NCBI RefSeq assembly: GCF_028641065.1 | Contig: NC_073408.1 | Coordinates: 14,322,001-14,386,000 of the forward strand | Source: Leucoraja erinacea | Taxonomy: Eukaryota | Direction of reading: 5' to 3' | DNA length: 64,000 bases | In this document: positions 21,791 through 63,965 of the stretch, piece by piece | Numbering within the stretch: the stretch's first letter is position 1 | How the letters are laid out: each line of letters begins with the position of its first letter | The notes under the pieces: generated by a model | What the model was told of the DNA's origin: nothing | Database searches by the model: none | Seen by the model: the letters and a program-made list of their open reading frames with translations, nothing else | Position numbers and translations under genes: made by a program

Positions 21791-21905
21791 AAAAACCATG
21801 TGGGATTTTAATACTCAGCTATTTTTTAATGTGATTTTCAATGAGTATCATCATTATTAGTGTAGAAATGAGCCTTGTTTTTTCAGTGCAAAATGGGTAA
21901 TTGTA

Positions 21906-25768: not shown

Positions 25769-26168
25769 CTGTGAAAGAAAATTCAAGGTTTCAACTAAAT
25801 GTAATGTTTCAGCTCTGAGAAACATAAAAAGTATAAAAAAAATACACTGCAATCGTTTTACTATATTTGACAGCAGGGTACATATTTCTTTCAAAGAGAC
25901 ACACTGCCATTTATAAACAAAACTACAGCACTCTAATGTTTAAATGTTCCAATTCTTCAATGGAAACACTATAAAATCAAAGCATTTGAAGATGACAGCA
26001 GTAAATCGTCTTTACTACATATGATTTGTAAAATAAATAAAATATTACAATTGATCAATCACTAAGATCAATAAAAAAGACATTGAACTAATTAAGCTGA
26101 GGTGTTATTTGCTAAGAATGATTCCACCTCAATTACCTAGGCACATGTATAATTACATTTCTATTTAC

Positions 26169-26486
26169 CTTTCCGTTTTGTGTTTATCGAGATACTTCTG
26201 TTTCTCCAGCCGTAGTCGTTTTTTGCCATGCACCAATACATTCCTTCATCTTTACGCTGGAAACGTATCCATTCTTTTGAACTGTTGAACCCGACTCCAG
26301 TTTGCAACGTTACATTATGATTCTCCGTAGCATTTGTCCAGAAAACAGTGGGCACCGGATTACTATCTACGCGACAATTCAGTTCCAGGAATGAATCAGC
26401 AGCAACAAAGATGATGCTATCATTGATCAGTCGAAAAGTATCCACTGCTTTCAACCTGTATGTTATTAATAGATCTTGTGGTCCAT
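26169..26486 (-). CDS. Gene B I/C2-set exon
   Basis: 318 nt, AG/GT; 3 amino-acid differences from A. Confidence 0.93.
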
Positions 26487-28372
26487 CTAACGGTAAAGAT
26501 AATGTACACTTTATTGTAGATTAAAGCAATGTGAAAAGAATTAACATGCAAGTAGACACAGAACAGCTATTTACAATCAAATTTTGCACTTCTGAAAGCT
26601 AATCATTCTCAAGGGGCCTCAGTACAACACGGACTGCCACTGAAGCCAAGTTGGAAAGAATCGAATACGTAACAAAAAGCTAAGCTTGTTCTTGTCTATG
26701 GAGAGTGAGGGATTGATGCGGAGAGGAAAGGGGAGTGAATGCTAGAGCTTAATGAACCATTTGCACGATGAAAGTTGAGAATCTTCGACATTACGACTGG
26801 AGAAATGTAGAATTGTTCGATGGTTATACAGCTGGTAGTAACGAGATGAAGTGTTTGGTAAACGTAGCAAATGGAGGTCCAAATGCCTAACCGTTTGAAG
26901 AGTCAACCCAGTAATATAATTCTTAGGTGATTTCCTTCACCTGTCGGAACACAGGTGGGTGTGGGGTTGTAAGTGATTTATACGGCTACCACAAATGATC
27001 ACAGATACCCCTGCATATGGTGAGAGTACTAGGGCCACCTGTGAAGGGAATGCTAGAGTAACTCAGCGGGCCAGGCAGCATCTCTGAAGAGGGAATGGGT
27101 GACGCTTTGGGTCGAGACCCTACTCCCGCTGAGTTACTCCAACTATCTTCTTTTTAAACCAGCATCTGCAGTTTCATCCTACACATGATAAGGGAATATT
27201 GTTGGTGTGGCCATGAATAGAGGAATTGATATTGAAAACAAAGTTATTGCAGGACAGAGGGCTATGAACTCAAAGACCTAAGGTTAAGACAAGTACATAA
27301 GACGGGCATTGAAAATAGCGAGAAGAAGATACCACTCATTGCAATGAAGTACAAAACAAGCAGAGATGCAAAATACAATACAATACTATACAAAACAATA
27401 CAATTTATTGTCAACGAAATTCTGTTTCCACAGCCATACAAACAAAGACAATTTCCTACAGACATACACACAATTTAATTCACACAAACAAGTCCCCCCC
27501 CCCCCCCCCCCTGCTCCCCACATATACCACATTTAAAACTAGTATTAAAAAAAACACCAACACTACATTTAACTAGACAAAAAATAAAAAAAAGACAGAA
27601 AGGCTGTAGGGGGCGCTGCAACGGGTGAGTCGCGCCACCAACCAAAGGGTGAAGTGTTGCAGGAGATGGATAAGGACAGAAGAAAGTGAGTTTTGGTGAA
27701 AGGGAACATAGAACCTCTGTGAGGCCGTAGCCAAGAAGTTTGGAGAAGGAGCAATTAGTTATATTTGAAATACTTTTATCAATGCACACACGCACAATGA
27801 GGACTTAGATGGCAAAAGTCCAATTCTAAAATAAATAGGATAGAACATGAATATGGAAGGGAGAGGGATGATGAATAATGATCCACCCTGTAAGTGTCAT
27901 AAACTCTGATTGCGAAGGAAGGTTAGCTGGATTAGCTTTTAAGATTGCCTCAGTGGAGGTGGGGAGACACACACATAGGATTACCAAGAGATATCTATAA
28001 ATAAGCTTCAAACTGAACTGAGAATGATTCAAATCTGGGAAATAATCATCATAGTTAGAAGACAATTAGGGGCAGATTAATTAAAAGCAATTGAGAAAGG
28101 TGAATTGAAACTTTGGGTCTGAGTAACAGGACAAGAGAGGAAGGCAAAATAGAAGAAACCAAGAACAATATAAATTAGAGAAAATGTAAGTGATAAAACT
28201 AATGGAACTGGGTCAATGAACAGGTAAAGTAGATGCAGAAGACATTCAGTTAGACTGGTATAGATGGTGATGTACAGTGCATATCAGTTATAACACAACA
28301 ATGTGCATACAATAAGAATTCAAAGATTAGCAACCATTGAATACCACTTCAAAAGTTATAGATGATACTTAC

Positions 28373-28663
28373 ACATAATATTCAGTTTGATCGTATTTAC
28401 AGCTGGCCGTCTAAAAACGGAATGATTAATCTGACAACTGCAAACAGTTCCATTGTCTTCCACTCTTGGGACAATCTTGTAATGACTGGTGGCAACTAGT
28501 GTGCCATTCCTGTCTGTTTCAAAAGTTGGTGCAGTGATATTTGTAGAAGTGCATGTCCATGTAAAGGAGATATCCTTGTCATGCAATCCCTTGCCAGTGC
28601 AGGTTAGAGTGGATTCATGACCAGCAACCAAAGTATCACTCCGTATATACATTTCTGGAAGAT
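28373..28663 (-). CDS. Gene B C1-like exon
   Basis: 291 nt, AG/GT; 4 amino-acid differences from A. Confidence 0.92.
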
Positions 28664-30269
28664 CTGAGAGAAGATAAAGCATAAAGTATTAAACTATATA
28701 TCACACATTTCAATGTTAGTGAAACTTACTGACAGAGTAAGTTGTCCAAAATTCTGCTCTATTTTCATAGAGAATATGTTAAATTAATGATGTAGAATTA
28801 TAAAAAAAATATAGCCCTTCTTTAGCTGAGACGCATCAAGGATCAAATATATGCTGGACCATTATAATATTACTCCATGGTCCTGGCAAAATGAGATCAT
28901 GTATATCCAACAGACTCACAGTCTTTTGGTTAGTATTGGCGATACTTGTAATGCACAGTAATGCACAGTAAAACATTTCAGTGAGAGAATAGTGGTAACT
29001 TGAGTTAATAATAATCACTGTAGAAATTTATGGTATAGAACAAGAGATCCCAACCTGGGATAAATTTACCCCCAGAGGGTAAATTTCGCCTACCTAGGGG
29101 GTAAATTTGTTGAGTCTGGATTTTGTACATATTTTTTCTCATTGACTGACTGTGTTTGGTTCTGGCATACCGGTATCTGTTCATCATTAGTTGTTCATAT
29201 ATAAGTGAAATAACATTGTTATGTGCTATTAAAGTTGCCAGTGGTAATCGGGACGAAAATGGTTGAGAACCCCTGGTGTAGGAGATACATGCTGCTCTAA
29301 AACATACGTTAAATTTACTCTCACTTCTCAAGTTCAAAGCCCTGTAAGTGATGCACTTCAAGTGCTTATTCAGGTACATGAAATTTGGTGAAGATTTCTA
29401 CTTCTTTTACCCATTCTGGTGATGAATTCCAGTCACTGCCACTGATTAAGTGAATTTATTTGTTTAATAAGGAATTGCAGATGCTGGAAAATCGAAGGTA
29501 CACAAAAATGCTGGAGAAACTCAGCGGGTGCAGCAGCATCTATGGAGCGAAGGAAGCTTCATAGATGCTGCTGCACCCGCTGAGTTTCTCCAGCATTTTT
29601 GTGTACGTCCAAGTGAATTTATTTGTTCACAACATCAACCCAATTTTGTCTACCAGCTAAATTACATCTATGCTTCTAAGTTACTCCGGGCAACGAGATC
29701 CAAGTCCTTTCTGGTTTGTTTGTTGAGACCTCACATAATTTAATGCACTGCAATTTAATTGCTCCTCAGACTTAATTGTTGCAAACAAAGGAGACCAACC
29801 CTGCTCTGCTCTTTTCTCACCCATAGCTATGTGGCTAAGCATAGCTCCAACGCCATCTATCAACTCAACAATGACACCATAGTGGTTAGCTGAATTAGGG
29901 GTGGTGATCAGTCAGTCCGCAAGAGAGAGATGGAACAACTGGTTGATTGGTGCTGCAACAACAAACTCTCACTCAAGGTCAACAAAACAAAGTAGCAAAT
30001 CATTAACTTTGGAATGGTGAAGTCGGGCGACAACATGCAGTTTTTAAGATTGGGTCAATGGTGGAATGAGTTAGCAACTTCAAATTCCTGGATGATAACA
30101 TCTCAGATGACCTCGCTTAAGCAGAGCACATAGCTGTAATCATGAAAAAGATCTACCACTGCCTCTACTTTGTTAGAAGTTTAAAAATTAATTGGGTCAA
30201 TAATATTATTGATTTCATAAACATAAAGTGGCGAGACTGGAGATCATCATGGTATTACAAATACTTTAC

Positions 30270-30617
30270 CATAAACCTGTATTCGTGTTCCTTGGCCCGT
30301 TTCATAAATTGGAGGGAAGACATTTGGTACCTTCACCGCACAGATGTAGTCGTAAACAGAGTGACCAAACGATACATTTTCAATCATCAGTGATACTGTA
30401 CAGTTGTTGAAACCACCCCAGAGGGGGTGAGGAATGCAGAGCGAGTTGTTCGTGTTGTAAGTAATATCAGCCCCTCCAGGCGATTTCCGATACCATGAAA
30501 CGCGGAGCCAGGCATTCACACTTCCATTATAACTAAACGTACAGTTTAACGTGACGGACTCGCCTCTGCACACTTTGACCAGACGTGGCTGGATCAAATT
30601 TGTGATTAGCGGAACTC
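30270..30617 (-). CDS. Gene B V-set (VJ-type) exon
   Basis: 348 nt, canonical AG/GT; 15 amino-acid differences from A. Confidence 0.95.
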
Positions 30618-30667
30618 CTGGTGGAAAATAAATACATTTGTCAATGATACTCCCGTTAGTAGTTCAA

Positions 30668-31407
30668 TAGGGTGATTTCACCTAAGGTCAAATGAGCGTA
30701 GATCCCCCCTCACGTGACCGAAAATTTTTACTGGAGGACATCTCTCAGTTTGGTACATGTAAGTGAATGGGGAAACACGCACTTTCCCACCCGTTAAAAA
30801 CATGGAAAACGGCCGATTTTTGAGCTGAAATTTTCTGTGCTAGTCGGGGTGACCGTAAAGCACAGCGACCTAAAATTTCAGGCAAAAAAAAAGATAGAAA
30901 GTAAGGTAATTACAAGAGGGAACTGAAGGTAGAAAGCAGTGGAAGTGAACAGCTGACATTTGCCGTGGTGATTTTAAGATCCAAAATATCGGGAATTATC
31001 GCGTTTGCTCGCTGAATTTCATCAAAAGGAAGGCATTATTAACTTACTTTTGATGAAATTTAGCGAGCAAACGCGATAATTCCCGATATTTTGGATCTTA
31101 AAATCTCCACGGCAAATGTTTGCTGTTCAATTCCGCTGTGTTCCACCTTCAGTTCCCTCTTGTATTTACCTTACTTTCTATCTTTTATTTTGCCTGAAAT
31201 TTTAGGTCGCTGTGCTTCACGGTCACCCCGACTAGCACAGAAAATTTCAGCTCAAAAATCGGCCGTTTTCCATGTTTTTAACGGGTGGGAAAGTGCGTGT
31301 TTCCCCATTCACTTACATGTACCGAACTGAGAGATGTCCTCCAGTTAAAATTTTCGATCACGTGAGGGGGGGTCTACGCTCATTTGACCTTTGGTGAAAT
31401 CACCCTA
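30668..31407. mobile_element. 740-bp foldback element (two ~365-bp inverted arms) in gene B intron 1
   Basis: TAGGGTGATTTCACC...GGTGAAATCACCCTA; ~10-nt loop at 31033-31042; empty site in A at ~11911. Confidence 0.9.
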
Positions 31408-32113
31408 TAAACATCCACTTTACACACTGAACGAGGGATTGGTTTTCTAACGGAAACAATACTTAAAAGAAACGCATTCAAATCTGACGATTTCAAACAC
31501 CGATTCTCGCTTCCATGATGGTTGCAAATGCCTTCTCTCAGCAGATTCGGTGGCAGGTGGCACCGTGATATTTGGACGCTAGAAAAGACACAAGTGGCTG
31601 GAGTAACTCGGCGGGTCAGGAAGCATCTCAGGAGCACATGGATGAGATGATTTTTCAAAGTTTGGAAAAGGGTCCCGACCCGAAACGCCTCCTATCCATG
31701 TTCTCCAGGGATGCTGCCTGCCTGACCCGCTGAGTTGCTCCAGCACTCTGTGTCTTCACTTGCAAACCAGAATCTGCTGTTCTTCGTTTCTACACCTTCG
31801 TAAGATTCTTGCTTTGTGCTCTCTGATGGAGTTGTAGTGACCGAATTATATCTCAAATGTTTTAACTATTTGAATCTTTGCAGGCAATCGCAGTCAATGA
31901 AGATGCAAAACTTTTATTCCAACATTAAAAATATAGATTAAATGGAGACTAAATATTTTGAAGGGTTTCTCGGCCTTTGAGCAGAGATATTAATCGACTT
32001 GCTGTTTTAATAACAGACTAGCTCCTGAACTACCTATCGATGCAATATGCCACATAATGAAGATCCTCATCACGGCTCCTTGGTCCACAGATTGTCCGAT
32101 CAACATAACTTGC

Positions 32114-32162
32114 CTTGTGTTCCTGCATGCAGGAGGAAAAGCAGCTTCAGGAGGAGTTGCAT
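32114..32162 (-). CDS. Gene B leader exon MQLLLKLLFLLHAGTQ(G)
   Basis: Paralog of the A leader with the same GC donor. Confidence 0.8.
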
Positions 32163-32320
32163 CTTTACCCGATTCTGACCGGCCCTGGAAATGTTAAACT
32201 CTCCGCCCGCGGTCAGCTCCAATCGTGCAAATGTCAAGTGAGGATGATCCGTCCGCTGTGAACTCGCATCTCAGACGGAGAATATCAGAGACTGTGAAAT
32301 GCCAGAGGGTGTACTGAGCA

Positions 32321-32360
32321 GAGGAAGTTACGTTCGAGCCGAAGGAAGTTTTCACTTTCC
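32321..32360 (-). promoter_or_regulatory. ETS + ISRE-like cluster upstream of gene B
   Basis: Same motifs as in gene A. Confidence 0.45.
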
Positions 32361-35300
32361 CTAGATTAATATCACTGCCTTTGTTCAAGCAAACACTGAG
32401 GATCTGTGTCAATGAAATCCACAGAGTGCGTGTTGGAAGAGAACGGAATCAAACACAATGTCACAGCATCTAAAACAGCTACCCCAGTCAATGCGCCGTC
32501 AGAGTGACTTCAGTGCCTTTTATAATTCGCTGCAGCAAGGTTGTCTTACTTCAAATAAGTTTCTTTCACCCATTGAAGCATTTTGATAAAGTTTAACTCT
32601 CACTTCCTGCACTGGCACCACTGAAAAATGCTTTTTCCGCCCTTGTTCAACCTATAGCATTAGGTTTAAAGTGAAGGGGGAGTTAATAGGAATCTGACGG
32701 GCAACTTTTTTTACACAATGACAAAAATGAGAGAAAAGGGAGCACAGGATTACCTGAAATTGCAGCACATGTAATAATCTAATTTTCATTGTTCATACTA
32801 AATTGTAGATTACCCAGATGAGATCTGAAGTGCTGTTCTTCCAATCTGGATTAGACCTCACCATGGTCATGTGAAGGCCTAGGACAGACTGGTCAGTGTG
32901 AGTAGGAAGGGGAGATGAAAGGTCTGGCAACTGGGAAGACAGAATAGCCATTAGGGACAGAGCACTTCCACGAGGCAGCTGCTTGAACTACAGCTGGTCT
33001 CGCCGATGTAGAGGAGATCACATCAGGAATACAAATTGAGTAGACAAAGTTGTAGCAGATCGTGAATCTACATCTGACCTGGAAATACTGTTTAGGTCAC
33101 TGGATGGTAGTGAGGACATAGATGTAGGAACAAGTGTAGCATCTCTTACGGTTGCAGTAGAAAGAGCTAGGGGGCAGGGAGAGGTGGGTGGGAATGTATA
33201 AGTGAATTAGTGAGTGGCAGAGGGAAAGCAGGAAGAGATGGGGTGGGGAAGATGTGACTGCTGGTGGGATCCCATCGCAGCTGGTGGAAAGGTAAAGACC
33301 AAGGGAATAGTATCTTTGTTAAATGGAGGAAATGTGAACGGGAGGTCCATCGACCACAGCAGAGGAGAAATCACATTTTGTGGAGGACATCTGAGATGTT
33401 ATAGAGTCATAGGGTCATACAGCATGGAAACAGGCCCATTGGCCCACCTTGCAAACATGTCCCAGCTACACTAGTCCCTCCTGTCTGCTTTTGGTCCATA
33501 ACCCACTAAACCTGTCCTATCCACGTACCTGTCTAAATGTTTCTTAAACACTGTAAGAGATAGTACCTGCCTCAATTATCTCCTCTGGCAGCTCGTTCCA
33601 TGCACCCTCCACCCTATCAGGTTCCTATTAAGCCTTTCCCCATAAACCTTATTACCTTAAACCTATGATGAATATAACTTCACCAGAGCCTATGTTCTGG
33701 AAAGGAAAGTCTCTTCTTGAGAGTAGATGCAACAGAAAAGGTGACACTGAGAGAAAGGGAAAGAAAGGTGGACTTACAGCACTGTGGTGCTGGCTCGAAG
33801 TACCAAATGACCTCGACTTGCACCTATTTTCTTTGTTTACAAGAGACCATGTGGGAGGAAGACTTGTCAAGATCATTGTGGGGGTTAGTTGGACTATGTT
33901 AAATGTCAGTAGATTGTTAGTCTCCTGAGACAGTGACAGAGAGATACAGAAAAAGGGAGAGATGCAAGAAATGGCCCAACTGAATTTTAGATTCATAGGG
34001 AGAAGATCATAGTGAAGGTGATGAACAGAGTCATTAAAGTGTTTACTTGATTTTGACTCTACTCTTCTGTATTATATTCTTGGGTCAGATTGTGAACTAA
34101 CCTCTTATATGGCATATGTGGAACTGCTCTGCATCTGTACACGGCCATATCATAACCAGACCTATTGGCACAGTAGATGCCATTCCTATCTTTTCTACCA
34201 GTGCGCCACCTTGTGCATAAATTTAACATAGCAGTTATATGCTTAAAATACATTTGGTTTGGTGCATTAAATGTAATATAACATGGGTATAATGATAAAA
34301 TATAATGTAAGTTGGCACAGATTTGGTGGGTCAAAGTGTCTGTTTTCACGCTGAATCTCTCCATGACGGTGACTACCTTTTGCACCCTATTTGGTGAAAT
34401 ATCTAGGCCTTTCCCAGTGGTGATCAGTTGTGAGAAATCAATGTACTCAAGTACGATGGCTCATGTGATAAATTGGCCCATTATTTGGTTGTCTTCTCTC
34501 ACTGCTTTGCAGATGAAGAAGAAAGGCATTTATGTGGAGAAGCTAGATAGTCAGCAAGGAAGAACAATTCTACTTTGGAAAAATAAGGGTATCAAGCAAG
34601 AACCAATTACTTTCTTGAGGTAGCTAAAGTAAATACTATTTAAGAATTTAAGAAATAATTTAAGAATAAGGGCTAAGCCATTTAGAACAGAGACGACAAA
34701 ACACTTTTTCTCACAGAGAGTTGTGAGTCTGTGGAATTCTCTGCCTCGGTGGAAGGCAGTGGAGGCCAGTTCTCTGGATGCTTTCAAGAGAGCGCTAGAT
34801 AGGGCTCTTAAAGATAGCGGAGTCAGGAGATGTGGGGAGAAGGCAGGAACGGGGATACTGATTGGGGATGATCAGCCATGATCACATTGAATAGCAGTGC
34901 TGGCTCGAAGGGCCGAATGGCCTACCCCTGCACCTAGTGTCTATTGTCTATTTATGAAATAGCTCCAGTGTTGAATTTGTTTTTTTATATTATAGACCAT
35001 AGAAAATATAGCACAGCAATACTATATAATATTTTTTCATATGAATTGAAAATGTGTAGGGTGTGAATAGGAACAACATTCAATAATCTGGAAAAGTTGA
35101 CAATCAACCAACTTTCAAATTCCCAAGTGTGTCGGATAATCAGACTTTTACTTGGCTCCATATTTGTAGTTTTCTTGCTTTCAGAAAAACTGTTGCTACA
35201 GATGCTGCAGTTATCTGCACTTTGATTTATGTTCTGAATCCTAGTGTAGTTCTTGCACCATCTGCTGGTCAAATATAAAACTGGATGGAGTTCAGAGAAG

Positions 35301-38300
35301 ATTTACGAGGATGCTGCCGGGACTTGAGGTCCTCAGCTCGAGGGAGAGGTTGGAACTTTATTCCTTGGCTAGGAGCGTATATGGATGATAGATGATCTGA
35401 TAGATAGATCGTATATACGATCATGAGAGGAATAGATATGGTGAATGGACAGGATCTTTTACCCACAGTTGGGGAATCAAGAACCAGAGAACATATGTAT
35501 AAGGTGAGAGAGAAAAGATTTTAATAGGAACCCGAGAGGCTACTTATTCACACACATGGTAGTGCGTTTCTGGAAGAAGCTGCCAGAGGAGGTAGTTGAA
35601 GCAGGTACGACAACAGTATTTGAAAGACATTTGGACAGGTACATGGTTGAAATGGTTTAGAGGGATATGGGCCAACATGGGCAGGTGAGACCAGTATAGA
35701 TGGGGCATCTTCGTCGGCATGGGTCAGTTGAGGTGAAGGGCCTGTTTCCGTGCTGTATGACTCCACGGCTCCACGGAAATTATGTCAATTTAGTAAACTC
35801 ACCGGTATTGAGTTTAAGTTGAGAAACAAATAGCCAAAAACCTCCTTATATGGGCCTGGGATTGTTTGTAATGGAAAAATGTTTCTTAAGAATGTTGGAT
35901 TTGAGAAGGTTGTCCAAAGCATGAATAAATAAATTCCTCATTTGTCTTTATTTTAATGCCTCAGAAAATTGGTATCGAAATCAACTGGACATACGCACAA
36001 GCAGAAGAACACATTGCTCTCCATGTAAGAGCTATAATTGGAAATAATTCTACCGAAATAAGACCCTTACAAATGCATCAGTGATGGCTCCTGCATCCAG
36101 TGCCAATATGGAAATAGGTTTGATTTTGGGTCACCTTGAGTCGCCTTGGACAGTTCCAGAGTTGGTGGGCGATGACCTCAGGCAGGGTGTGTGCTTGATG
36201 AGAAGCATCTGATTCTTACATGGTTACAATTGGGTTACAATTGGGGCCATGGATTCAGCGTGTAATGTTCACAGAGGCCACATAAGTGGAAGCTCACAAC
36301 CGGAAACGTCGCTTGTCCATTACCACAGAGCTGCTGCCTGACCCGTTGAGTTATTCCATCACTTTGCGTTTTACTTAATTGGGATTGGTTCTCTGTAGAT
36401 GAAATGTATTAATTTATTGACACAGTGAATGTATTGGATCTGATGACACCATGAATTCAAGTAAAGAATGGATGAATCAAGGTATATGGGGAGAAGGCAA
36501 GCACGAGTTACTGATTGTGGATGATCAGACACGATCATAATGAATGGCAGTGCAGGCACGAAGGGCCAAATGGCCTCCTCCTACACCTATTTTTTTATGT
36601 TTCTATGTTTTCTCATGAGGCAATTCACGATGGATATTAAAAATGTGTATCATCAAAGCAGTTTGCCTCAATTTCCGTACAATAGCTGGCTGTGCATTTT
36701 TCAACTCAATTTTTAAATCAACACATCAAGGATGAGTCAATGAGCAAACCTTGAAACCACACACCTGACACCAGCTCAATGAACCATCTGTTACAGCTTT
36801 TTATCTTTAGAAAACAAACACCTCTTAAGTAAAGCACAAAATGCAGGAGTAACTCGACAGTTCAGACAGCAGCTCTGGAGGGAATGGACTAGCAATCTTT
36901 TGGGTTAGGAACATTCAATCATGTCTCAAAACTATATTTGATCTAAGGTAAGTAACAGATCAGATGTAATTTACAGCAGAGAAACAGACTCATGCATATT
37001 GGAGACAGAAGCAACAAAGGCTATACAAATGAATTAGTTCCTACCAAAGAAGTCCCAGTTGTATAATGTGGGAAAGTCTAACCTTGACCAGCCGACTCCT
37101 ACTGACATGTGCAATTTACCCAGGATTTATTGAGACTGTTAACATGACATTTAATATTGCTGATCACTGATTTCCACAATTCGGCATGGTGCAAAATAAG
37201 TCAATGCTCCTTTTAATCTGCTTAAGAGCAGCAATCAATAAATGCATTGTATATCACACACTCCTATGTACGTCAATCATTCCCTGCTTTATTATCCAGC
37301 TGTCGTGAGATTTCCAGTGCAAGCAAAATGCTGAGGACTCTTACGCAACCTGAAAGGCCAATTTAGCTTTTCTATGCAGATATTGCATGACTTGCCGAGT
37401 ATTCCCAGCATTAGCTGGTTTTATTTCAGGTTACGAAATAAGTGGCAGGGTAATTATTTTAGAGTCATTCACAGGCCAATATTTTGAAAGTTTTTCTTGG
37501 AAGCTGCTAAATGATCTAAAGGAAATTGACCTCCCATAAACTGGACACCGTTTTATGGGAAGTCGTTATGAATTTCCTTCAGATCATTTAGCAGCATCCA
37601 AGGAGCAAATCTTTCATTGCTGGAGGCCCCAGCCCAGTTGGTAAGTTGCAATATCTCTCAATATTTAGTAGTTCCAGAAATGAGAATTATGGAGGCAGTT
37701 GAAACACACAGAATACTGTGCCTTTGAATGATTTAAGTGACAAAAAGTACATTTCACTGACTGTTCTGACTCTTGTGTGAATTGAAACTGCTCGCTTCTC
37801 AGAACAGATGTTTCAGGTTGACATTCAAATATAACAAAACAATCCCACGCTGAACAATTCCCCAAAGAACATTTCAACTGCATTCAACCTGGGAGGCTAT
37901 CAGGTTACCGACTTCAAATATCACTTCTAAAACCCACACCAGAAGCGCCTTGGCAGCTCAGGTTCTCGCTCTGAAACACTGTAAAATAACGAGTGATTCA
38001 AGGAAACAAGACTACCTTATTAGAAAATAGAAAAGTTTACGTAGGGACAGGAATCTTCTTGTGGCATTCTACGTCCAGCCATTAGTCACATGATGCAATT
38101 TGTAAAGGGGTGCGTACCTGATATAGCATGGGATTCATCATCATGGCAGTTCAAGCCTGTAACCTGCAGTGGTCTCAAGTTCAGGCAAACATGCATGGAT
38201 TCAAGTATAACTCCTGGAATAAGGATGGTTGGAGTTAATGACAGAGTCCCTGAAATCCAATCATTTTCCTCATGATTGCAGATGCCAGCTCTGACACTAA

Positions 38301-45082: not shown

Positions 45083-47719
45083 TGCATCCTTTCTAATTGT
45101 ACGTGGTCAGATGTGTCTCTTCAACCACTGTGACCACGATGAAACTGAACTGATCACGCGAGGATATAATGCACAAGAGAATTCTGTGACAGTTGGATAT
45201 TGTGAAGTTTGAAAGAAATGTACCAAATTAAGGGAATGTTGGCAGGAAACACTTTATTGCAACTGATGGTGTTCCTACTGGAGCACAGATACTCAACAGG
45301 TCAGTGTCTTGGTTAATATCCTTCTTTCAGCTTGTGTATTGTGGAATCAGCTCATAGATTGAAATGATCACAAAAAATTAACAAAAGCCAAAGTGTTAGG
45401 TGTGTGATTTAATCAGTCTGTGGGGAGATTTACAGAAGCTGATGATGGCTAGAAGCAGCTTAGATCTCCGGAGCAGGGATCTGAGCAGCTTGCCTCTATC
45501 TTGGCTGAGGCATCATGGCAGGACAGTTGGAGAAGGTAGGTTGCCATTTTGTAAATTCTTTACCTGTGGCTGCGTGACTAAGATAATTTGCAATGCAAAA
45601 TGTCTGAATTTTAATGAAAAGCTGGTAGGATTTTATTTACTTGGTTGAACCTCAGAATTAATTAAAGGTTTGAATTTAATTAAAAACATTCAGATTATCC
45701 TGCTTTGAACAGAGAAAGCTAAAACATGAGCTGTTCAATAATTGTGGGGGGAGTTTACAGATTTTACAGATTAAATGGCAAATAATTAATTAGGGTATTA
45801 ATAATTAAATTAGTGAGCTATTATGATGCATTTCTATGGAATTAATTTTTAACCAAAACATTATTAATTTTAAACAATTTCACTGCGATATTGAGAACAT
45901 GCAAAAACCATTCACCAATAACTGACTGCTTCAAAAACCAGCACAGGAAATGTCTAATAAGAACAGCCTAAGGTTTCTGAAGAAGGGTCTCGACCCGAAA
46001 CGGGTCACCCATTCCTTCTCTGCAGATGTGCTGCCTGTCTCGCTGAGTTACTCCAGCATTTTGTGTCCACCTTCGATTTAAACCAGCATCTGCAGTTCTT
46101 TCCAACACACCTAAGGTCCATTTAGCTTGCCTTCTACCCAATCCAAATGGCTGCAGGTTCATTTCTGATTCTTCAGTTCTCCACAAAGTTGTGTGCTGTC
46201 TTCCACAAGGAAGAAGAAAGTGGCTTTCCCTGAAGATTGAGATTTCAGAACATCGATCAGAGGTGATGATGCAATGTGAGTTTTACTTGTTATAATGTTG
46301 AGTGAAACAACATGGAAACAAACCCTTCACTTCATCGGGTCCACCCCAATAATAAAGATCCTATTCCTAAAATGATCCTCCTGTAAACCACTTTATTTGC
46401 CATATCAGCTACCCAGTCCCCACTCTATATTCTACCATTCATCTACACCCAGGGGACAAGGTGTAGATTAGTGGTGGAATCATCTACCACTGATCTATAT
46501 CCTGTGACCATTTAACCAAGTAATCCACACTAATATAAAAACAAGATGCCCATTGAGTCAGGCTGTATCCCGTGGAAAGTGAAACGGTCAATGTTTTGGG
46601 CCTGCAACTCTTTTATTAAAACTGCAAAAAGTTTCCAATGAAACATTGCCTTTATTTTCGCTGATGCTGCCTGACCTGCTGAGTTTTTCAAACACTTTTT
46701 ATTTCAGATGTTCAAGAACTTACATGCAAATTCCAGACTCAAGAGGCTTTTATTTGTCGTGTGAACAATTTATGAATGGAACAATGACATTTTTACTTCA
46801 ACAGGCACATTAAATGCAATTAAAAAATAAATAAATGTACCATTAATTATTAGTGATTGAACTGATAATTAAAGTGGATCATAGTCATCTAAACAAATCA
46901 TCCATAATCATGCAAAGTCCGTTGTAGGAAGGAACTGTAGATGCTAGATTAAACCAAAGATAGACACAAAATGCTGGAGTAACTCAACAGGACAGGCAGC
47001 ATCTATGGAGAGAAGGAATAGGTGATGTGTTTTGGCTGAGAGTTTAATTAGCACCAGGGACATTCAGAACCAGAGAAGGATTCAACTCCTGCTGCAAGAG
47101 AGTACAATGATTAGATATTTTAAGTTATAATGTACATTTTTTCAAAAAATATTATGGCATTTATTAAAAGCTACAATAAAAGTTAGAAGTGGATATTTTT
47201 AAGGAGGTGATTGACAGATTCTTGATTAAAATGTGTGTCAGGCGTTATATGCAGAAGGCAGGAGAAAGAGGTTGAGGGAGAGAGATAGAGCAGCCATGAT
47301 TGAATGGCAGTGGTGGGCTGAATGGCCTTAATCTACTATTACTTACGAATTTATGATGTTAGCAGTCACTTCAGAACTTGAAGTAATTATCAGCCAAGGA
47401 TCATAATAGCAACATTCGGATACCTCTGATGGTGTCACAAATGAAACAAATTCAGGCAGAATATTGCATCACAAACCAACATAACATTAAATCTGAAAAA
47501 GGTAAATATATTATTTAAGAAAAATAATTGATACAATGGAAAGCCAATCTTCAATTCAGACCCTCCTACCCTATCTGGTTTGATCTCCCCATCATCCACA
47601 CCTTTGCCCATTGTACCATCTATCACTTGGTCTGAAGAAGGGTTTCGGCCCTTCGTTGCCTATTTCCTTTGCTCCATAGATTTAAAAATAATTGATGCAA
47701 TGGGAAGCCAATGTTAAAG

Positions 47720-48077
47720 TGGCGGCTGAGCCGCTGAAGGAGTGCCTAGAGATGAGAGGGAAATGAGCAGCAAACGTGCAATGTCAAGCACGGGATCTGG
47801 GGGCTATGCGTGATGTGCTTTTTATGGTTGCAATATGACTGAGGGTAGGGGAAAGGAGAGGGAGGGAAAGGTGAGGGAGGGTTGGGGGGACGGGATTTTG
47901 GGGGAACGGTGAGTGGTGCGCAGGTTGGGGGCTATGAGTGAGTGGTGCAATTTGTGTTGGGGGGCGGGATGCATTGGGGTAACGGGTGAGTGGTGGAATA
48001 TTGCATTGGGGAACATGTTATTTTGGGGGACCAGGCCTCCCATGTAACAGGTACCAAACAGGTCCCGCTTAGTCTAG
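47720..48077 (+). mobile_element. Helitron-like 3' end fragment
   Basis: G-rich body, degenerate subterminal hairpin, ends CTTAGTCTAG. Confidence 0.35.
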
Positions 48078-48784
48078 GTATTAAAATACAACTCTCAAAT
48101 ATTCAGATTGCCTTATAGTTCAATATTTGTTTAGGTTACTTTTATATTCAGTTATGTAATGAATACTCTATACCTCATTTCATGCATCCCTATTCAATAT
48201 TCCAAATAATTAAAAATGGCTTCATTTCAATAAATGTTCATCAAAAATTAATAATCCAATAAAATAAAAATACACCATAAATTAAAAAAATGCACAATCA
48301 TATATATTTTAAAAATAATTGATGCAATGGGAAGCCAATGTTAAACTTAGGCCCTCTACTCCCATCTGCTTTCATCTGCTCATCATCTGCCCCTCCCCTG
48401 GATCCATTTGCACATTCTCTGCTCCCCATCTGGTTCTACGGGTTGCCAACTAATCCCCATCCCATTCTCCCACATCCAACTACATACTGGTTATCTTTTC
48501 CAATCCCCCCAACGTCCTGTTGCATGGACTCACCCAAAACATATAATACCTTCAGCCTCCCGACATTCTGCTTGACCCACTGAGTTCTTCCAGCATTCTG
48601 TTTTTGTCTCCAGTTCAGCATTGCTTTTAGTCTAGTTTTGTTTAGTTTAGAGATACAGTTTGGAAACAGGCCCTTTGGCCCACCAAGTTCACGCTGATCA
48701 ATGATCCCCTGGTGTTGTTTAAAGTGAGCTTCCGTGGGACTATTAATGGATGTAAAAATAACAAATTTATTTATGTTCCATCAG

Positions 48785-49132
48785 GAGTTCCGTTGATCAC
48801 AGAGTTGACCCAGCCACGTCTGGTCAGTGTGTGGCGGAGCCAATCCGTCACGTTAAACTGTACATTTACCTATAATGCAAGTGTGAATGCCTGGCTCCGT
48901 GTTTCCTGGTATCGGACATCGCCTGAAGGGGCTGATGCTACTTACAAAATGGACAACTTGCTCTGCATTCCTCACCCCCTCTGGGATGGTTTCAACAACT
49001 GTACGGTATCACTGAAGATTGAAAATGTATCGTTTGGTCACTCTGTTTACGATTACATTTGTGAGGTGAAGTTACCAAATGTCTTCCCTCCAATTCATGA
49101 AAAGGGCCAAGGAACAAGAATACAGGTTTATG
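48785..49132 (+). CDS. Gene C V-set (VJ-type) exon
   Basis: ccatcag acceptor, G|GTAAAG donor; 93/116 amino acids identical to gene A V. Confidence 0.95.
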
Positions 49133-51388
49133 GTAAAGTATTTCCAATACTATGATAATCTCCAGTCTCTGCACTCTATACAGGTTTATGATAAAGTATT
49201 TATATAATTCTGCAGAAATGCAGTTCCTATAGTATATATATTGATTATACTTACATATCATACCACATTTAGATACATTGACATAGATTAATAACACACA
49301 CCATGGGAAGTCAGGCTAATTAATTGTAATTCATTCCAACCAAGAAGAATAATAAGTAATTTACCAATGTTGATTGTGGAATTTTCAGTCAAATGTAGTC
49401 TGTGCAGTTATGTAGCCAAGGCAAAGGGATCATAAAATAAAGTTGGGGAAAGGTAGAAACATTGAGCAGTATAGGTTACAACTGTGTTAAGAGAAACAAT
49501 TAAAGTTTATTTTTCCACAAATTCTGCCTGAGAGCTTGCAATAGTTTTTATTTTCAACTCAGATCTCCAGCATCTGCAGTTTTAATGCAAAGAATCATAG
49601 GTTAGGTATGAAGACTATCACTGAAATTAATTTTGTGCGTCTTTCATTGTTATTATCTGCTCCAAGTGTTGGCAGGATGGATACAATGGGTTTAGAGGGT
49701 TAATGGCCAGGCGCAGGCAGGTGGTACGAGTGTAGATGGGGAATATAGGTTAGCGTGGGCAAGTTGGGCCGAAGGGCCTGTTTCCATGCTGTATGACTCT
49801 ATTAGCTGGTTTTACAATTGTTAAAATATTCCAAATATTTGGATTGCCTATACTTCAATACATGTTTAGGTTAAATTTATATTCAGTAATCTACTTGATA
49901 ATTTAGTAGTTTGTATGTTAGATACCTATGTGCACTTACACTTAGGTTGTAAGCTGCAGGCAAATGGGTCTAGATCCTAATCCTAACATTGTGGGGAATG
50001 GGTATGGTGGGCCAAAGGGCTTATTTCCATTCTGTACAGCACTATAACTCTATAACCACCTCCAAAATTCTCCGTCATCACTGCTTAATCTACAAAGTTT
50101 GAAAGATTATTACCATGGTCTTTACATTTTTCTCTTCTCTTTGGCGGATTATTCTCTCTCTCCTGCAATGCACTGACCCCCTTCATCAATACTGCCACGT
50201 CCCTTCTTGTCTTCCCTTCCCCATCCTTCTGCAGTATCTTCATCCAAGAATGTTACACTTTCTTTTTGGACATATCTCTGGTTTTCTTGTCACATTCTAA
50301 TCCTGGGTGTTCAGTTGGTCTTTCAGGTCACCAACAATTGTTAAATCCATATCTGATGTTAAATGCAGCTCTGTTTAACCTGTTCACTGCCAATTTTTTT
50401 TTCACTTTTGGCCAATGACCCAAGTATACTCGGGGGTGGCACTAAACAGGTTAAATGTGTAACGTACTCTGTCTATTCCTGCGTAACAACTCTCTATTAT
50501 TTGTTCTGGAAAAATGGATCACTGTCAATTTGTTCTGCTTCCTATAGAGATCCCGACAATTATTCCTTCCTTGACCCTAACTCTACTCCCCCTCTCCTGA
50601 ACAGTTGACCGACCCAGGACGTAAAGGATCTTGGCTCTGTTTGCTTCTCCCCTCAGTACACACAACTGAATGGTGAATAGGGTAAGATGTCCTGAGAGGT
50701 CAAGGCCCGAAATGTCACCTGTACCTTCTCCAGAGATGCTGTCTGACCCACTGAGTTACCCCAGCTTTTTGTGTCTATCTTCAGTTTAAACCAGCATTTG
50801 CAGTTCTACATTTGCTACATATGCCCTGAGAGGTCTTTGGCTTAATATCGATAATATCAAAAACAAAAGAGCAATCCAACCAAGACCTCAACAGTGGAAC
50901 AGGCGGAGAATGATGGCTGTCCTTTGTGGAGTGTCACAACGGCTGGGAAGGTGGATGAAGGCTGCAGTAGGAAAGGGTCTCCGGTCATCTTAGATTCCAT
51001 GCCACTGGATCCTGACCCAGATCTGTCAAGGACTGTGGGGTGGCTGTCTGTGCACCAGCCTCCCCACGTTAAACAAAGTCACGCACAGGTGTCCTCCATA
51101 TAGGGAATAACATTCTGGAGACACCCATAGTCAGCCATGACCGAAGGGGGCCTAAGCAGAGTAGGTCATGCAAACTTTGTCAACATTTATCCAAGTTAAC
51201 AATTAACAATACAATTTATAACACTCATGGGAATACCTTTGTGTGGGTCTACAAGACATTGGTTATCACCAGGAAAAAATAATATTTCTGATTCACATTT
51301 ACTGAAGTGGAATTGTTGTTAACATTAAAGATAGACACACAATGCTGATGTAACACAATGGGACAGGCAGCATCTCTGGAGAGAAGGA

Positions 51389-51428: not shown

Positions 51429-51529
51429 ATAGATTGTGGATAAATGCTAACTAACATGCTTTGTTCTTTTTATTTAGCATGTAAGTATATAGCACAACAT
51501 ATAACTTTGTTTCATGTTATTTGTTCCAG

Positions 51530-51856
51530 TCCCAGAATCTACACCAAAAATTCTAATGACTCAGGGAGATTTAATAGCAGAGAAAGCATCTGTTTTGTAC
51601 TGCCATGCATGGGGATTTTATCCTGAGAACATCACAATGCAATGGCAACATCCTCACAAAACTCAAGCTACAAAATCAGATGTTATTATTACCACAAAAC
51701 TCTCCCCTTCCAGGAACTCTGATGGCACATTTAATGCAACAAGTCAAATTAGTTTTACTCCCACCTTGCAAGACCACAGGACAGTCTGTACTTGTCAGGT
51801 TCTTCATACAACAAGCAAAGAGTGGATAATGCAACACATAACACTCAACGTTAATT
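51530..51856 (+). CDS. Gene C C1-set exon
   Basis: ttccag acceptor (alternative in-frame acceptor at 51536), T|GTAAGT donor; canonical C1 motifs LYCHAWGFYPENITMQW, NSDGTF, CQVLH. Confidence 0.93.
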
Positions 51857-55046: not shown

Positions 55047-55367
55047 ATGGTCCACAGCCAGCAATACATTACAGGAATTCTATTGCGCATCAATTGCAGC
55101 CTCTGCTCCAAGACATCATCTATGTTGAACCTCAGTCGTATCTTCAACTAAATTGTACCACGGACAGTAATCCAATATCCACGGTCATCTGGATGAAATC
55201 GGGAGAGCAAACTGAAAGGATACAATTGACTATTGGATTAAGTCATTCAAATCTGCAGAAAGAGAAGATCGATGATTCCTTCAATGGAAAGTATATCTGC
55301 AGAGCTTACAATTCATATGGCGCCAAAGAATCTTCTGTGAGAGTATACGTGACATCAGATTGGAAAA
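55047..55367 (+). CDS. Gene C I/C2-set exon
   Basis: YGPQ...LNCTTDSNP...W...GKYICRAYNSYG; A|GTAAGT donor; acceptor at the homologous position is an unusual GAG. Confidence 0.85.
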
Positions 55368-56088: not shown

Positions 56089-56699
56089 TTGTCCAAGGGT
56101 CTCCAATGAGGTAGATGGTAGCTTAGGATTGCTACCTAGTTGTTGATACGAAGGCTCAGTTGCCTGATTTTGCCTTTGTGAATCATACATGAAGCAGCCT
56201 GAATTGCATTCATCTATATGACCATCCACATTTCAGAGGGTAAGCACATTGTGGATGGAATGAATTAAATTCAATGAGAACAATCGAACATTGAAATTAC
56301 AAATTAACATGTCTAGCCTAACGTGTTAGTGAGAACACAATTAATGGTATTTTTTAAAATATTCTAACGTGGTCAGATACGTCAGCTATTAAAAAAGAGT
56401 ATATCACAATGTCTGTGCCAAACATGATGCCAAGTTAAACTGATCTCATCTGTCTGTACAAGATCCATATCCCTCCATCCCCTGCATATCCACGTGCCTA
56501 TCCAAAAGCCTCTATCGTAGCTGCCTCCACCACAAGCCCTGGCAGTGTGTTCCAGGCCCCCGCCACCACCATCACATTGTGCCAAAAAAAACTTGCCCCT
56601 CGCTTCTCCAATAAACTTTCCCCCTCTCACTTTATGCCAACATTATACAACAAGTATACGGGGCTTAACTGCAATTTGAATGGATTGGAGTAAATCAAT

Positions 56700-57375
56700 A
56701 ACATTTGGATTCTTCCAATGAGTCTTGATTTTCTGATGCCCAGACCACAATCTGACAGCACCTCCTTCACAATAATTGTCAATATCAGTGCCCTGCAAGG
56801 ATGCTTTCTCAGACCCTTACTGTACTCCCGATACACTAATGACTGTACGGCCAAATTCGGTTCAAAGTCCATCCACAAATTTGCAGATGACACCAGTGTG
56901 GTGGGCTGGATCATGAACAATGATAAGAAAGAAAGGAAATAGAGTACTTAGTAAAATTGTGTTAGGAAAATATGGACAGAAGTCTACACATATTGACAAT
57001 AACTTCTCCCTCAATGTTTGCAAGATGAGCGAGCTAGTTATCAATGTCTGAAAGTGTGGTGCAAAACATGGCCCGAATCACCATCAATGAAGTAGAAATG
57101 GTTGAGATCTTAAATTGTCTTGCCTTTAATATTATTAATTCAATGACTCTGATAATATAATATTATTTAATGACTCTTACAAACTTCCACAAAAGCACCA
57201 TAGAAAGCCTACTGTTGGGTTGCAACACAGCTTGGTTTGGGAGCAGTTCTACCCAAGGCTGCAAGAAATTGCAGAGAATAGTAGATGTAGCCCAGACCAT
57301 CATACAGTCCAGACTTCCCACCATTGATCCCATCTACACTACACTCTGCCTCAGAAAAGCAGCCAAAATAATGTA
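56700..57375 (+). mobile_element. Degraded Rex1/RTE-like LINE fragment
   Basis: QGCFLRPLLYSRYTNDC...KFADDTSVVG; STIESLL.GCNTAWFG. Confidence 0.75.
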
Positions 57376-57990: not shown

Positions 57991-58068
57991 GTCATTTCCC
58001 TGTCCGATTTGTAACGGTGCCCATCTTCGTGACGACTGTGATTTTGTTACTGCTCTGCTGCAGGAAAG
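57991..58068 (+). CDS. Gene C TM exon SHFPVRFVTVPIFVTTVILLLLCCRK
   Basis: ttgtcttacag acceptor, AAG|GTAAAT donor, phase 1-1, hydrophobic. Confidence 0.88.
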
Positions 58069-59151: not shown

Positions 59152-59176
59152 ATCGGGACTGCTTGTGCAAATGGAG
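59152..59176 (+). CDS. Gene C cytoplasmic mini-exon DRDCLCKW(R)
   Basis: tttttattgtatag acceptor and strong GAG|GTAAGC donor; open in phase 1->2. Confidence 0.65.
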
Positions 59177-60817: not shown

Positions 60818-60917
60818 GAACTCAAAGCAACACAGGAACCAACGCCGATTGGCCAAAAGTGACTCTTCGGAAAATGTTAACAGCCAAAAAGAGATCATAG
60901 CTATTTCTGAATTCTGA
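60818..60917 (+). CDS. Candidate terminal exon of gene C: RNSKQHRNQRRLAKSDSSENVNSQKEIIAISEF*
   Basis: Long polypyrimidine tract ending tcattag; open in phase 2; hydrophilic; AATAAA motifs downstream (~61452-61568). Confidence 0.5.
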
Positions 60918-62099: not shown

Positions 62100-63965
62100 G
62101 GTGCATGAAAAGTTCTTTATTTTAGAACACAAACAATGAGTCACGCGAGTCGAATAAGACAGCCAAAAATAATGTTGCTTCCACAAGTGTAGACACCAGA
62201 CTGGCAGTTACTGACAGTTAAATCAAAAAAACAAACTTCCAATAGAACACCCGCTGACGGAGATCCGCCAACACCGCCGGGGTGTCTTCTGGGTGCCCTC
62301 GAACCGCATGGAGTAAATCCCCGGGCACGCGCAAAGCCGAGTCGTGGACCAATTCGGCGGACGATGCATCCAAATCTGCCTTGGGGGCCGTGCAAATGCC
62401 TAAGAGGACCCAAGGCAACAGGTCTACCCAGTCTGGACTCGTGAACCATGCCTTCAGGGCCGCTTTCAAGTGGCGGTGGAACCACTCCATGAGTCCGTTT
62501 GCCTGGGGGTGATAGGCGGTGGAGTGGTGCAACTGTGCCACCACTGGGAGGGCCGGGCGGAACATGGTGTCAGCCAGTACTTCCTGGCCACGTGGGTGCA
62601 CCAGCATGGTGGCTCCAGCGAACGCCGCTTTTGCACCCTTGAGGCACTGGAAAAGGGGGCACATGATTCTGGCCGCCGCCAGCATGAAACGGTGGTAGAA
62701 GTTTACCATACCGACAAACTCCTATAGGCCTTTCACAGTTGGCAGCCTGGGGAACTGCCGGATGGCCTCCACCTTAGAGGGCAATGGGGTGGCGCCCTGC
62801 GAGGTGACGTTGTGGCCCAGGAATGAAATCATGCAGAGTCCAAACTGGCACTTGGCGGGATGACAGAGTAGTGGAGCCGCTGGAAAAGCATCCGCAGGTG
62901 TACGAGGTGCTCCTGTTGGGAGCGGTTCATGACCAGGATGAGTATAAATGGGGATCCTGTGGATAGGGTGAACTGTTTTAAATATCTGGGAGTCCACATC
63001 TCTGAGGATATGACATGGTCATCACACGCCTCAGCACTGGTGAGTAAGGCAAGGCAGCGCCTTTACCACCTCAGGCAATTGCGGAAATTCAGAGTGTCTC
63101 TGAGGATCCTCCAGTGCTTCTACGCAGCAGCAGTGGAAAGCATCTTGTCCGGGAACATTACAATCTGGTTCGGGAATTGCTCTGCCAAGGACAAGAAGGC
63201 TCTGCAGAGAGTAGTGCGTTCGGCCGAACGCACTATGGGAACTTCACTCACCCCCCTGCAGGAACTATACAACAAGAGGTGCAACTCCAGAGCAAATAAA
63301 ATCATGAGAGACCTCTTCCACCCCTGCAACAGACTGTTCCAGCCGCTGCGGTCAGGCAAACGCCTCCGTTGCCATGCAGTGAGAACGAAGAGGTTGAGAA
63401 GGAGTTTCTTCCCAGAGGCAATTCGGACTGTAAACGCCTTTCTCACCAGGGACTAACTGTACAGAACGTTTTTCCTTCTATTATTTATTACGTAAAATAA
63501 TATGTGTGATTGTGTTTAGAATTTGTTTGGTTGTTTTTGTTGTTCCGCGAGCATTGCCACTTTCATTTCACTGCACATCTCGTATGTGTATGCGACAAAT
63601 AAACTTGACTTGACTTGACTTGACTTGGATGTCATCGAGGTAAATGTAGATAAAGTTCAATCCCTGACCGACTATGTCCATTAGGCGCCGGAACACCCGA
63701 GCTGCGTTCTTCAAACCGAAGGGCATGCGGAGCCACTCAAACAGCCTGAACGGGGTGATGGTGGCAGTTTTGGGCACGTCTACCGGGCGCACAGGGATCT
63801 GGTGATAACACTGGACCAGGTCCACCTTGCAGAAAAAGATGGTGCCCTCCAGATGGGCCGAAAAGTCCTGTCGATGTGGGACCGGGTAGCAGTCCACGGT
63901 TGTAATGGCGTTCAGGCGCCTGTAATCCCCGCGCCTGCAATTACATGCGTACGCACAGCCGTCTG
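62100..63965 (-). mobile_element. Degraded Ty3/Gypsy pol (RT and integrase fragments)
   Basis: DYRRLN...YPVPH, KVDL..YHQI, MPFGLKNA, YLDD; CQFG..FLGH; YHPQANGLMEWFHRHLK..W..LPWVLLG. Confidence 0.9.
62929..63627 (+). mobile_element. Rex1/Babar-like LINE 3' part, nested in the Gypsy element
   Basis: FKYLGVHISEDMTW...KARQRLYHLRQLRKF...; (CTTGA)n tail. Confidence 0.85.

Follow-up and report, generated by a model that had tools for sequence, protein, structure and literature searches.

Probable gene conversion of a V exon between old, head-to-head receptor paralogs in the skate Leucoraja erinacea

Why would one exon of a receptor gene closely resemble its counterpart in two neighboring genes when the following exons do not? 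This question is raised by a 64,000-nucleotide (nt) stretch of Leucoraja erinacea DNA (NCBI RefSeq assembly GCF_028641065.1, contig NC_073408.1, forward-strand positions 14,322,001 to 14,386,000), hereafter called the window, whose own numbering is used throughout. The locus contains three non-rearranging immunoglobulin superfamily receptor genes, designated A, B, and C, with the layout leader, V(J), C1-set, I-set, and transmembrane (TM) exon. Genes A and B are encoded by the minus strand and gene C by the plus strand, B and C being arranged head-to-head with their V exons 18.2 kb apart. We propose that, in the skate lineage, the V exon of gene C was overwritten via interlocus gene conversion from a gene of the A/B lineage, and we assign this reading a probability of roughly 85%. 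A first-pass annotation of the same DNA had suggested gene conversion or exon exchange between old paralogs; the suggestion is supported by the contrast in synonymous divergence (dS), by the intron flanks, and by discordant trees.

BLASTN of 48001–50000 against the window returned two non-repeat matches only: 48716–49191 aligned to 11930–11459 in gene A (85.5%, 476 bp), and 48739–49191 aligned to 30663–30215 in gene B (87.0%, 453 bp). The block common to gene C (48716–49191, plus strand) and to genes A and B (minus strand) is 85.5–87% identical and contains the entire 348-bp V exon flanked by intron sequence, ~69 bp upstream and ~59 bp downstream. Its homologs are 11459–11930 in gene A (V exon 11514–11861), which represents the donor lineage, and 30215–30663 in gene B (V exon 30270–30617). 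As observed in a three-way alignment by a sliding-window count, similarity drops to background at ~48705–48716 and ~49175–49191, and a short-word BLAST search found no further homology beyond either edge. When the 46 nt adjoining the exon on each side were counted, the upstream flank was identical at 35/46 positions (76%) and the downstream flank at 39–40/46 (85–87%). A low-stringency comparison of the gene C region (40000–64000) with the A/B regions otherwise showed multi-copy interspersed repeats only. The first-pass annotation had placed the shared stretch at 48710–49190, with similarity reaching only ~50–70 bp into each intron and the genes head-to-head, all of which was reproduced here.

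Several repeats adjoin the block. Inverted copies of a short interspersed element (SINE)-like repeat lie on either side of it, at 48629–48709 and 49738–49801; the upstream copy is truncated and stops exactly where homology to gene A starts. Nothing homologous was found upstream of this fragment by short-word search that would make it the splitter of a longer tract. A 22-nt repeat of the exon end and donor (49122–49143 and 49180–49201) was considered as a junction footprint and rejected, since A and B have a weaker copy at the same spacing. In gene B, the upstream homology ends at 30663, where it is cut by a 742-bp palindromic insertion (30667–31408). This long palindrome or foldback element matches its own reverse complement at 94%; it is present in gene B only, ~50 bp upstream of the V-exon acceptor, and breaks homology with both A and C.

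The V exon differs sharply from the C1 and I exons in its divergence. The V exons of C and A are identical at 309/348 nt and those of C and B at 311/348 (88.8–89.4%), and the proteins agree at 92 and 94 of the 115 complete codons, respectively (80–82% overall); the earlier count for C and A was 93/116 (80%). In contrast, the C1 exons of C and A/B are 30–32% identical in protein and ~49–50% in DNA with dS of 1.3–1.8, and the I exons are 34–35% and ~49–52% identical with dS of 1.0–1.5, both dS values being saturated; the manual alignment of the first-pass annotation had given ~30% for both domains. For the V exon, nonsynonymous divergence (dN) is 0.10–0.12 and dS 0.13–0.19, giving dN/dS of 0.5–1.0, and third-position identity is 88% compared with 38–42% for C1 and I. 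Thus, dS of the V exon is about ten times below that of C1 and I, and the maximum-likelihood path between C and A measures 0.24 in the V tree, compared with 2.01 and 2.07 in the C1 and I trees, respectively. The first-pass annotation had itself proposed that equal dS in V and in C1/I would leave purifying selection as the explanation; the values are 0.13–0.19 and 1.0–1.8. Residue changes since the transfer fall mainly in the presumed N-terminal strand and in residues 44–59 of the V alignment, and the SVNAWLRVSWYR segment, and the PNVFPPxHEKGQGTRIQVY loop and J region are nearly unchanged; we infer from the sequence the strands to which these parts are assigned.

The block was also recovered independently. 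Three runs of two related organisms (A and B), ~2% and ~3% diverged from the window, gave contigs that cover 48652–49070 and 49017–49777 at single-copy depth and are 96.8–98% identical to the block. Because they cover both edges, the block and its edges are real and not an assembly artefact, and they are older than the splits from the two related organisms. In the V exon, related organism B differs from the window by 6 non-synonymous and 4 synonymous changes without a stop codon. In the C1 exon, it shows two synonymous changes, and related organism A shows an in-frame 3-nt deletion.

To place these exons in a wider family, relatives were gathered via HMMER, cluster look-ups, and word searches with database proteins. 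HMMER with the V exon of gene C returned six strong relatives only, and a word search with this exon alone gave no match at match lengths limited to 0.55–1.75 times the query, which excludes full-length relatives. Two lineages were recognized. A-type proteins (~490 aa) have V-C1-I-TM followed by a long tail with one immunoreceptor tyrosine-based switch motif (ITSM) and two ITIMs (immunoreceptor tyrosine-based inhibitory motifs), namely TxYxxV, VxYxxI, and SxYxxV in all A-type orthologs; they occur in L. erinacea, Rhinoraja, Narcine, Mobula, and at least eight sharks. The L. erinacea A-type protein P0026 is identical to the Ig exons of gene B and carries TIYAVV, VSYADI, and SEYSVV. C-type proteins, found in Pristiophorus, Hemiscyllium, Hemitrygon, and Scyliorhinus torazame, combine a C1 domain of the GFYP kind with an Arg ahead of the hydrophobic TM segment and a short tail ending TSEF, ITEF, or TSEL. 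The paddlefish (Polyodon spathula) protein P0022 likewise has V(J)-C1(GFYP)-I, an Arg-then-hydrophobic TM segment (VRMVTYPLFV), and a short tail, so the C-type lineage may be older than the split of bony and cartilaginous fishes. From skate to paddlefish, C-type genes have kept the short tail without tyrosine motifs and the Arg at the outer TM edge.

In the C1 and I trees, A-type and C-type sequences form separate clades with 97–99% support. Gene C falls among the C-type sequences of stingray, sawshark, and catshark, with the stingray one as its sister. Since each clade holds both sharks and batoids, these trees place the split of the two lineages before the divergence of sharks and rays, in agreement with the first-pass description of old paralogs. 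The V tree differs: its topology is ((Rhinoraja A1, A2), (C, (A, B))), supported at 75/90, 89/72, and 99/95, placing skate C inside the skate A-type clade. Approximately unbiased (AU) tests rejected holding the V of C with the sawshark C-type V (p = 0.001), as well as all A-type V as one clade without C (p = 0.0002), and accepted A-type plus skate C with sawshark C excluded (p = 0.47). Therefore, the per-domain trees that the first-pass annotation had called for give V a history different from that of C1 and I.

The J motif indicates the direction of transfer. The V of skate C ends KGQGTRIQVY, as do all A-type V domains, whereas two shark C-type V domains end GPGT(R/Q)LHV; because gene C carries the A-type motif, the donor is identified as the A-type lineage and the transfer is read as A-type to C-type. 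As to timing, at the positions where the A and B V exons differ, C agrees with A at 8 and with B at 9. Accordingly, the V of gene C branched off before the present A/B divergence in the V exon, the event being older than that divergence. Judged by dS, it is about ten times younger than the split between A-type and C-type.

Divergence within the block is uneven. Fixed differences between C and A plus B number 23/105 to the left of 48844 and 21/322 to the right (max-chi-square, permutation p = 0.0014). The step persists when only intron and third-codon positions are counted (16/65 versus 10/129, p = 0.003), and dS within V is 0.26 for codons 1–58 and 0.09–0.11 for codons 59–115. The less diverged sub-tract (48844–49165, plus strand) is possibly the product of a later, shorter conversion, and the pattern hints at two nested tracts of different age and thus at more than one event, a mutation-rate gradient being the alternative to a second tract. 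For V, the sawshark A-to-C distance (0.96) is smaller than the A-type skate-to-shark distance (1.18), whereas for C1 and I the former is almost double the latter. This single sawshark sequence weakly hints that other lineages, too, exchanged V at an older date.

In the course of events that we propose, ~480 bp of gene C (48716–49191; the V exon with ~130 bp of flanking intron) was replaced non-reciprocally by the homologous segment of an A/B-lineage gene, between genes lying head-to-head 18–37 kb apart. Exon phase and splice sites were kept without leaving a relic V exon, and a second, shorter tract (~48844–49165) may have followed the first. The data show the block with its edges, the contrast in dS, the discordance of the trees, the A-to-C direction, and the open frames of gene C; the replacement would have proceeded through homologous recombination. 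Searches of the window with tblastn and a family hidden Markov model (HMM) found three V exons only, with no fourth or relic V exon in gene C. Because the A-type exon sits at the V position of gene C and no relic is present, in-place homologous conversion fits better than insertion followed by loss.

Some observations weigh against this reading. The ancestral C-type and A-type V domains would have been ~50% identical in protein, which makes homologous conversion mechanistically awkward unless earlier exchanges had kept the V domains similar. The C-type V comparison set is small, consisting of one complete sequence (sawshark) and one 31-residue fragment (epaulette shark), and the AU test did not settle whether the event came before or after the Leucoraja–Rhinoraja split (p = 0.118). 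Furthermore, one polyA RNA run from a related organism (~6% read, tissue unspecified) gave zero depth on the V and C1 exons of gene C, and no annotated L. erinacea protein of gene C was found in the protein collections. As to function, the C-type Arg sits at the edge of the TM segment and not within its core.

The alternative that survives best, although we regard it as unlikely, is non-homologous exon shuffling, in which template switching or repair synthesis placed a ~0.5-kb copy of an A-type V exon in the first intron of gene C, with later deletion of the original V exon. In its favor, divergence of the ancestral C-type V probably exceeded what efficient homologous pairing allows, and the 5′ edge of the block adjoins the truncated SINE-like repeat whose inverted copy lies downstream. 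However, the tblastn and HMM searches found no relic or fragment of a V exon anywhere in gene C, and the exon is exactly at the V position with phase and splice sites intact. The tract length is also typical of gene conversion, and the step in divergence inside the block is in keeping with homologous events that were repeated.

A considerably smaller chance is left for transfer in the reverse direction, by which the ancestor of skate A and B received its V exon from gene C. The V of gene C resembles the Rhinoraja A-type V slightly more (83%) than do the V domains of A and B (78–79%), and several of its residues agree with Rhinoraja. This nearness is explained by the fast protein evolution of A and B (dN/dS above 1), and the skate V exons carry the J motif and N-terminal signature found in A-type genes from sharks to rays, not those of the shark C-type, and group with the other A-type V domains.

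Less probable again is that no transfer took place, purifying selection having constrained V far more strongly than C1 and I ever since the old duplication. In the sawshark, the V domains of the two lineages are indeed also closer than their C1 and I domains (path 0.96 versus 1.70 and 1.60). Nevertheless, dS is about ten times lower in V, the V dN/dS of 0.5–1.0 does not point to strong constraint on the protein, and the 76–87% similarity over 46–69 bp of both introns is beyond the reach of protein-level selection. Between A-type skate and sawshark, the V path is 1.18 compared with 0.94 and 0.90, indicating that within each lineage V evolves as fast as C1 and I or faster, and for V the topology of the gene tree is rejected by the AU tests. 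Purifying selection is therefore rejected by synonymous sites and introns. Misjoining of A/B V-exon reads into gene C is scarcely credible. Short-read assembly could indeed confuse three V exons of such similarity, but more than 40 fixed sites distinguish the block from A and B, and the contigs described above jointly cover both edges at the depth of the flanking unique DNA.

What the conversion would mean for the receptors depends on how the two lineages signal. On the strength of the ITIM/ITSM tail, present in P0026 and all A-type orthologs, the A-type would be an inhibitory receptor. The C-type, which combines a TM-edge Arg with a cluster of palmitoylatable Cys residues and a C-terminus that is short and PDZ-like, may signal differently and is possibly activating. 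Conversion from A-type to C-type would then re-match the binding face of C to that of the A-type, such that both might present the same or a similar face to a ligand; paired inhibitory and activating function with a shared ligand is what we infer by analogy. The broader proposal, that A-type and C-type form a paired-receptor system older than the cartilaginous/bony fish split (the paddlefish relative has the C-type TM segment) and whose V domains recurrent V-exon conversion kept matched over hundreds of millions of years, is tentative, and we consider it possible rather than probable. The skate event, the nested tract, and the small sawshark A-to-C V distance could be traces of such long-term matching.

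A hallmark of mammalian immune receptors that evolve fast, for example Siglecs, CEACAMs, KIR/LILR, and SIRP, is that inhibitory and activating partners undergo gene conversion in their ligand-binding exon, which is usually read as a response to pathogens exploiting the inhibitory member. The case described here is a new instance of this known evolutionary mechanism, in a cartilaginous fish, in one exon, and between very old paralogs of an undescribed and mis-annotated VJ-C1-I family. The same pattern in a skate would show the device to be as old as jawed vertebrates, with exchange confined to one exon linking paralogs otherwise ~30% identical. If the ancient paired system were real, no older case of paired receptors co-evolving through gene conversion would be known, and the VJ-C1 family harboring it would bear on antigen-receptor origins. 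The locus offers comparative immunologists a defined place to study ligand sharing and opposite signalling. It is also a warning for annotation and phylogeny, in that whole-protein trees of the V(J)-C1-I family would mix two histories.

The gene models underlying these comparisons were built by six-frame comparison of open reading frames (ORFs) with Pfam, the distal exons of gene C being guided by C-type proteins of other species; searches were run per exon or with database proteins, not with spliced models. All V, C1, and I exons of the three genes have AG/GT sites and phase 1-1, and the predicted leader and six further exons of gene C (all plus strand) are open with consensus splice sites. 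The candidate leader (45236–45300; MLAGNTLLQLMVFLLEHRYST/G, donor CAG/GTCAGT, slashes marking the splice) is predicted from sequence, the region having been scanned for an ATG together with a hydrophobic core and a phase-1 donor. It is followed by the V(J) exon (48785–49132; 348 nt, phase 1-1, AG/GT, open frame, C-terminal GQGTRIQVY, Pfam V-set E=1e-7) and the C1-set exon (51530–51856; GFYPENITMQW ... TCQVLH, Pfam C1-set E=7e-12), which falls in the C-type clade, is 71–72% identical to Hemitrygon C-type, and has UrIg2 (9dmx, E=1e-11) as its best PDB match. Two in-phase acceptors 6 nt apart precede the C1 exon (CCAG/TCCCAG/, 51526–51535); because the first AG reads AA in related organism B (51529 G>A), the downstream acceptor may be the one actually used.

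Further downstream, the I-set exon (55047–55367; Pfam I-set E=3e-8) belongs to the C-type clade with 98/95 support in the I-domain tree. The TM exon (57991–58068; HFPVRFVTVPIFVTTVILLLLCCRK) has the Arg at its outer edge, and C-type orthologs read HRFVTVPIFV, LRSVSVPIFV, and VRSITMPIFV. A 25-nt mini-exon (59152–59176; DRDCLCKW) matches DRCFLCN of Hemitrygon and DRYGPCN of Pristiophorus and restores the frame between the TM exon and the last exon. The last coding exon (60818–60917) encodes the short tail without tyrosine motifs, ending ISEF before the stop, where the orthologs end TSEF, ITEF, and TSEL.

Gene A (5581–12666, minus strand) was located by tblastn with P0026 and comprises the leader (12618–12666), V (11514–11861), C1 (8347–8637), I (6665–6982), and TM (5581–5679) exons, its ITIM-coding exons lying beyond the window start. 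Gene B (25671–32162, minus strand), a tandem duplicate of A, has the corresponding exons at 32114–32162, 30270–30617, 28373–28663, 26169–26486, and, for the TM copy, 25671–25769. In a self-comparison of the window, 1228–16614 matched 21035–36086 at 86–97%. The leader-to-I part of the duplicates is 94–97% identical and the 3′ part (1228–5914) only 86–88%; either the 5′ part was homogenised between A and B, or the duplication occurred in two steps. The older (3′) part is about as diverged as the V block of C is from A and B.

Between the V exons of A and B, there are 17 nt differences, of which 15 change the amino acid. Here dN is 0.059 and dS 0.026 (ratio ~2.3), whereas dN is below dS in the C1 and I exons. 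With C as outgroup, 9 of the differences fall on A and 8 on B, and the pattern points to diversifying selection after duplication.

The TM exon of gene B has an in-frame TAA just before the donor (..IIYFCLFRNR followed by the stop), which would give a tail-less receptor. The NCBI protein P0026 joins the leader, V, C1, and I exons of B to the TM exon of A (100% match) and to ITIM exons outside the window, and therefore represents either splicing of B across gene A or a chimeric model. In Rhinoraja, both a 380-aa short-tail form and a 491-aa ITIM form exist. At 12610–12620 and 32106–32116, the A and B leader exons end ..ACACAAG/GCAAGT; if P0026 is spliced as aligned, this donor is GC (a GC-AG intron). 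Elsewhere in the window, ORF fragments at 17299–18231, 56694–57373, and 62872–63453 are ~40–50% mutually identical and two match Pfam ALKBH8_N (PF09004); they look like retrotransposon remnants and not genes. A run of N occupies 19724–19861.

Public labels for the family are generic or misleading. NCBI automatic names of the relatives include Siglec-12/13/14, MAG-like, sialoadhesin-like, and SIRP-alpha-like, and Pfam, solved structures, and ESM Atlas gave only generic Ig, Siglec, CD22, MAG, and nectin-like labels. The V domain is of VJ type, with the canonical B-F cysteine pair, a strand F (YDYICEV) without Arg, and then the J-like GQGTRIQVY; among solved structures, it comes closest to Ig light-chain V domains (E about 1e-5). 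By Pfam, the third domain is I-set/Ig_3, and its structural matches are I-set domains of titin, DSCAM, and contactin. A literature search found no paper describing this V(J)-C1-I family, an undescribed one that is mislabelled as Siglec or MAG in public annotation. PRARP, another VJ-C1 family, is possibly related.

Siglecs have a V-set domain with a sialic-acid-binding Arg on strand F and a B-E intrasheet disulfide, followed by C2-set domains. Siglec identity was rejected for the skate genes, whose strand F lacks the Arg, whose cysteines are canonical, which carry the J-like motif, and whose second domain is C1-set (Pfam). SIRP proteins have a V-C1-C1 ectodomain. The skate genes resemble SIRP-alpha/beta in having a V with a J-like motif followed by a C1-set domain, in comprising ITIM-bearing and charged-TM members, and in the 'SIRP-alpha-like' name of the paddlefish relative. 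However, the match to SIRP-gamma is weak (E=2.5e-6, C1 only), and the third domain is I-set/Ig_3 and not C1, by which SIRP membership was rejected. The UrIg and UrIg2 genes are non-rearranging elasmobranch VJ-C1 genes with three to eleven C1 domains and no I-set domain (PMC12227049). They share with the skate genes a germline-joined VJ exon followed by a true C1-set domain, UrIg2 being the best structural match for the C1 of gene C. In contrast, the skate genes have a single C1 and an I-set third domain, and their V shows no specific similarity to that of UrIg/UrIg2; membership in this group was therefore rejected as well. Gene conversion in UrIg2 occurs among its own C-domain exons, within one gene (PMC12227049).

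Paired receptors with a converted exon are the closer parallel, as the V exon of gene C is far more like that of A and B than the rest, with low dS and similarity into the introns. In such pairs, one partner bears ITIM or ITSM motifs, the other has a short tail and a charged TM residue that recruits an adaptor with an immunoreceptor tyrosine-based activation motif (ITAM), and both are expressed in the same cells. In Siglec-5/Siglec-14 and the ITIM/ITAM CEACAM pairs, the N-terminal ligand-binding domain is likewise kept near-identical by conversion, within a species, between the inhibitory and the activating member, and the rest differs (PMC4042635, PMC2832619). These mammalian pairs differ in having known ligands or pathogens, usually higher identity, and more recent events, whereas the last event in the skate is old (dS 0.09–0.26) and the exon has since diverged with high dN/dS. 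The nearest likeness is to primate SIGLEC11/SIGLEC16, which lie head-to-head 9 kb apart with V-set conversion (PMC5701461) and to which the first-pass annotation had compared this locus. Both systems have head-to-head genes, repeated non-reciprocal conversion over the ligand-binding V exon (in the skate, repetition is suggested by the nested tract), and relaxed constraint on the converted exons, and in both one partner has an inhibitory tail and the other a short tail with a charged TM residue, although the inhibitory and activating roles of the skate genes are predictions. The analogy holds for mechanism and orientation, but not for age and extent: SIGLEC16 is a young duplicate of SIGLEC11, similar over ~2–3 kb and several exons, whereas the skate genes are very old paralogs, 30–35% identical in C1 and I, that share one exon block of ~0.48 kb, with a VJ-type V domain held by the canonical B-F disulfide in place of a Siglec V-set domain.

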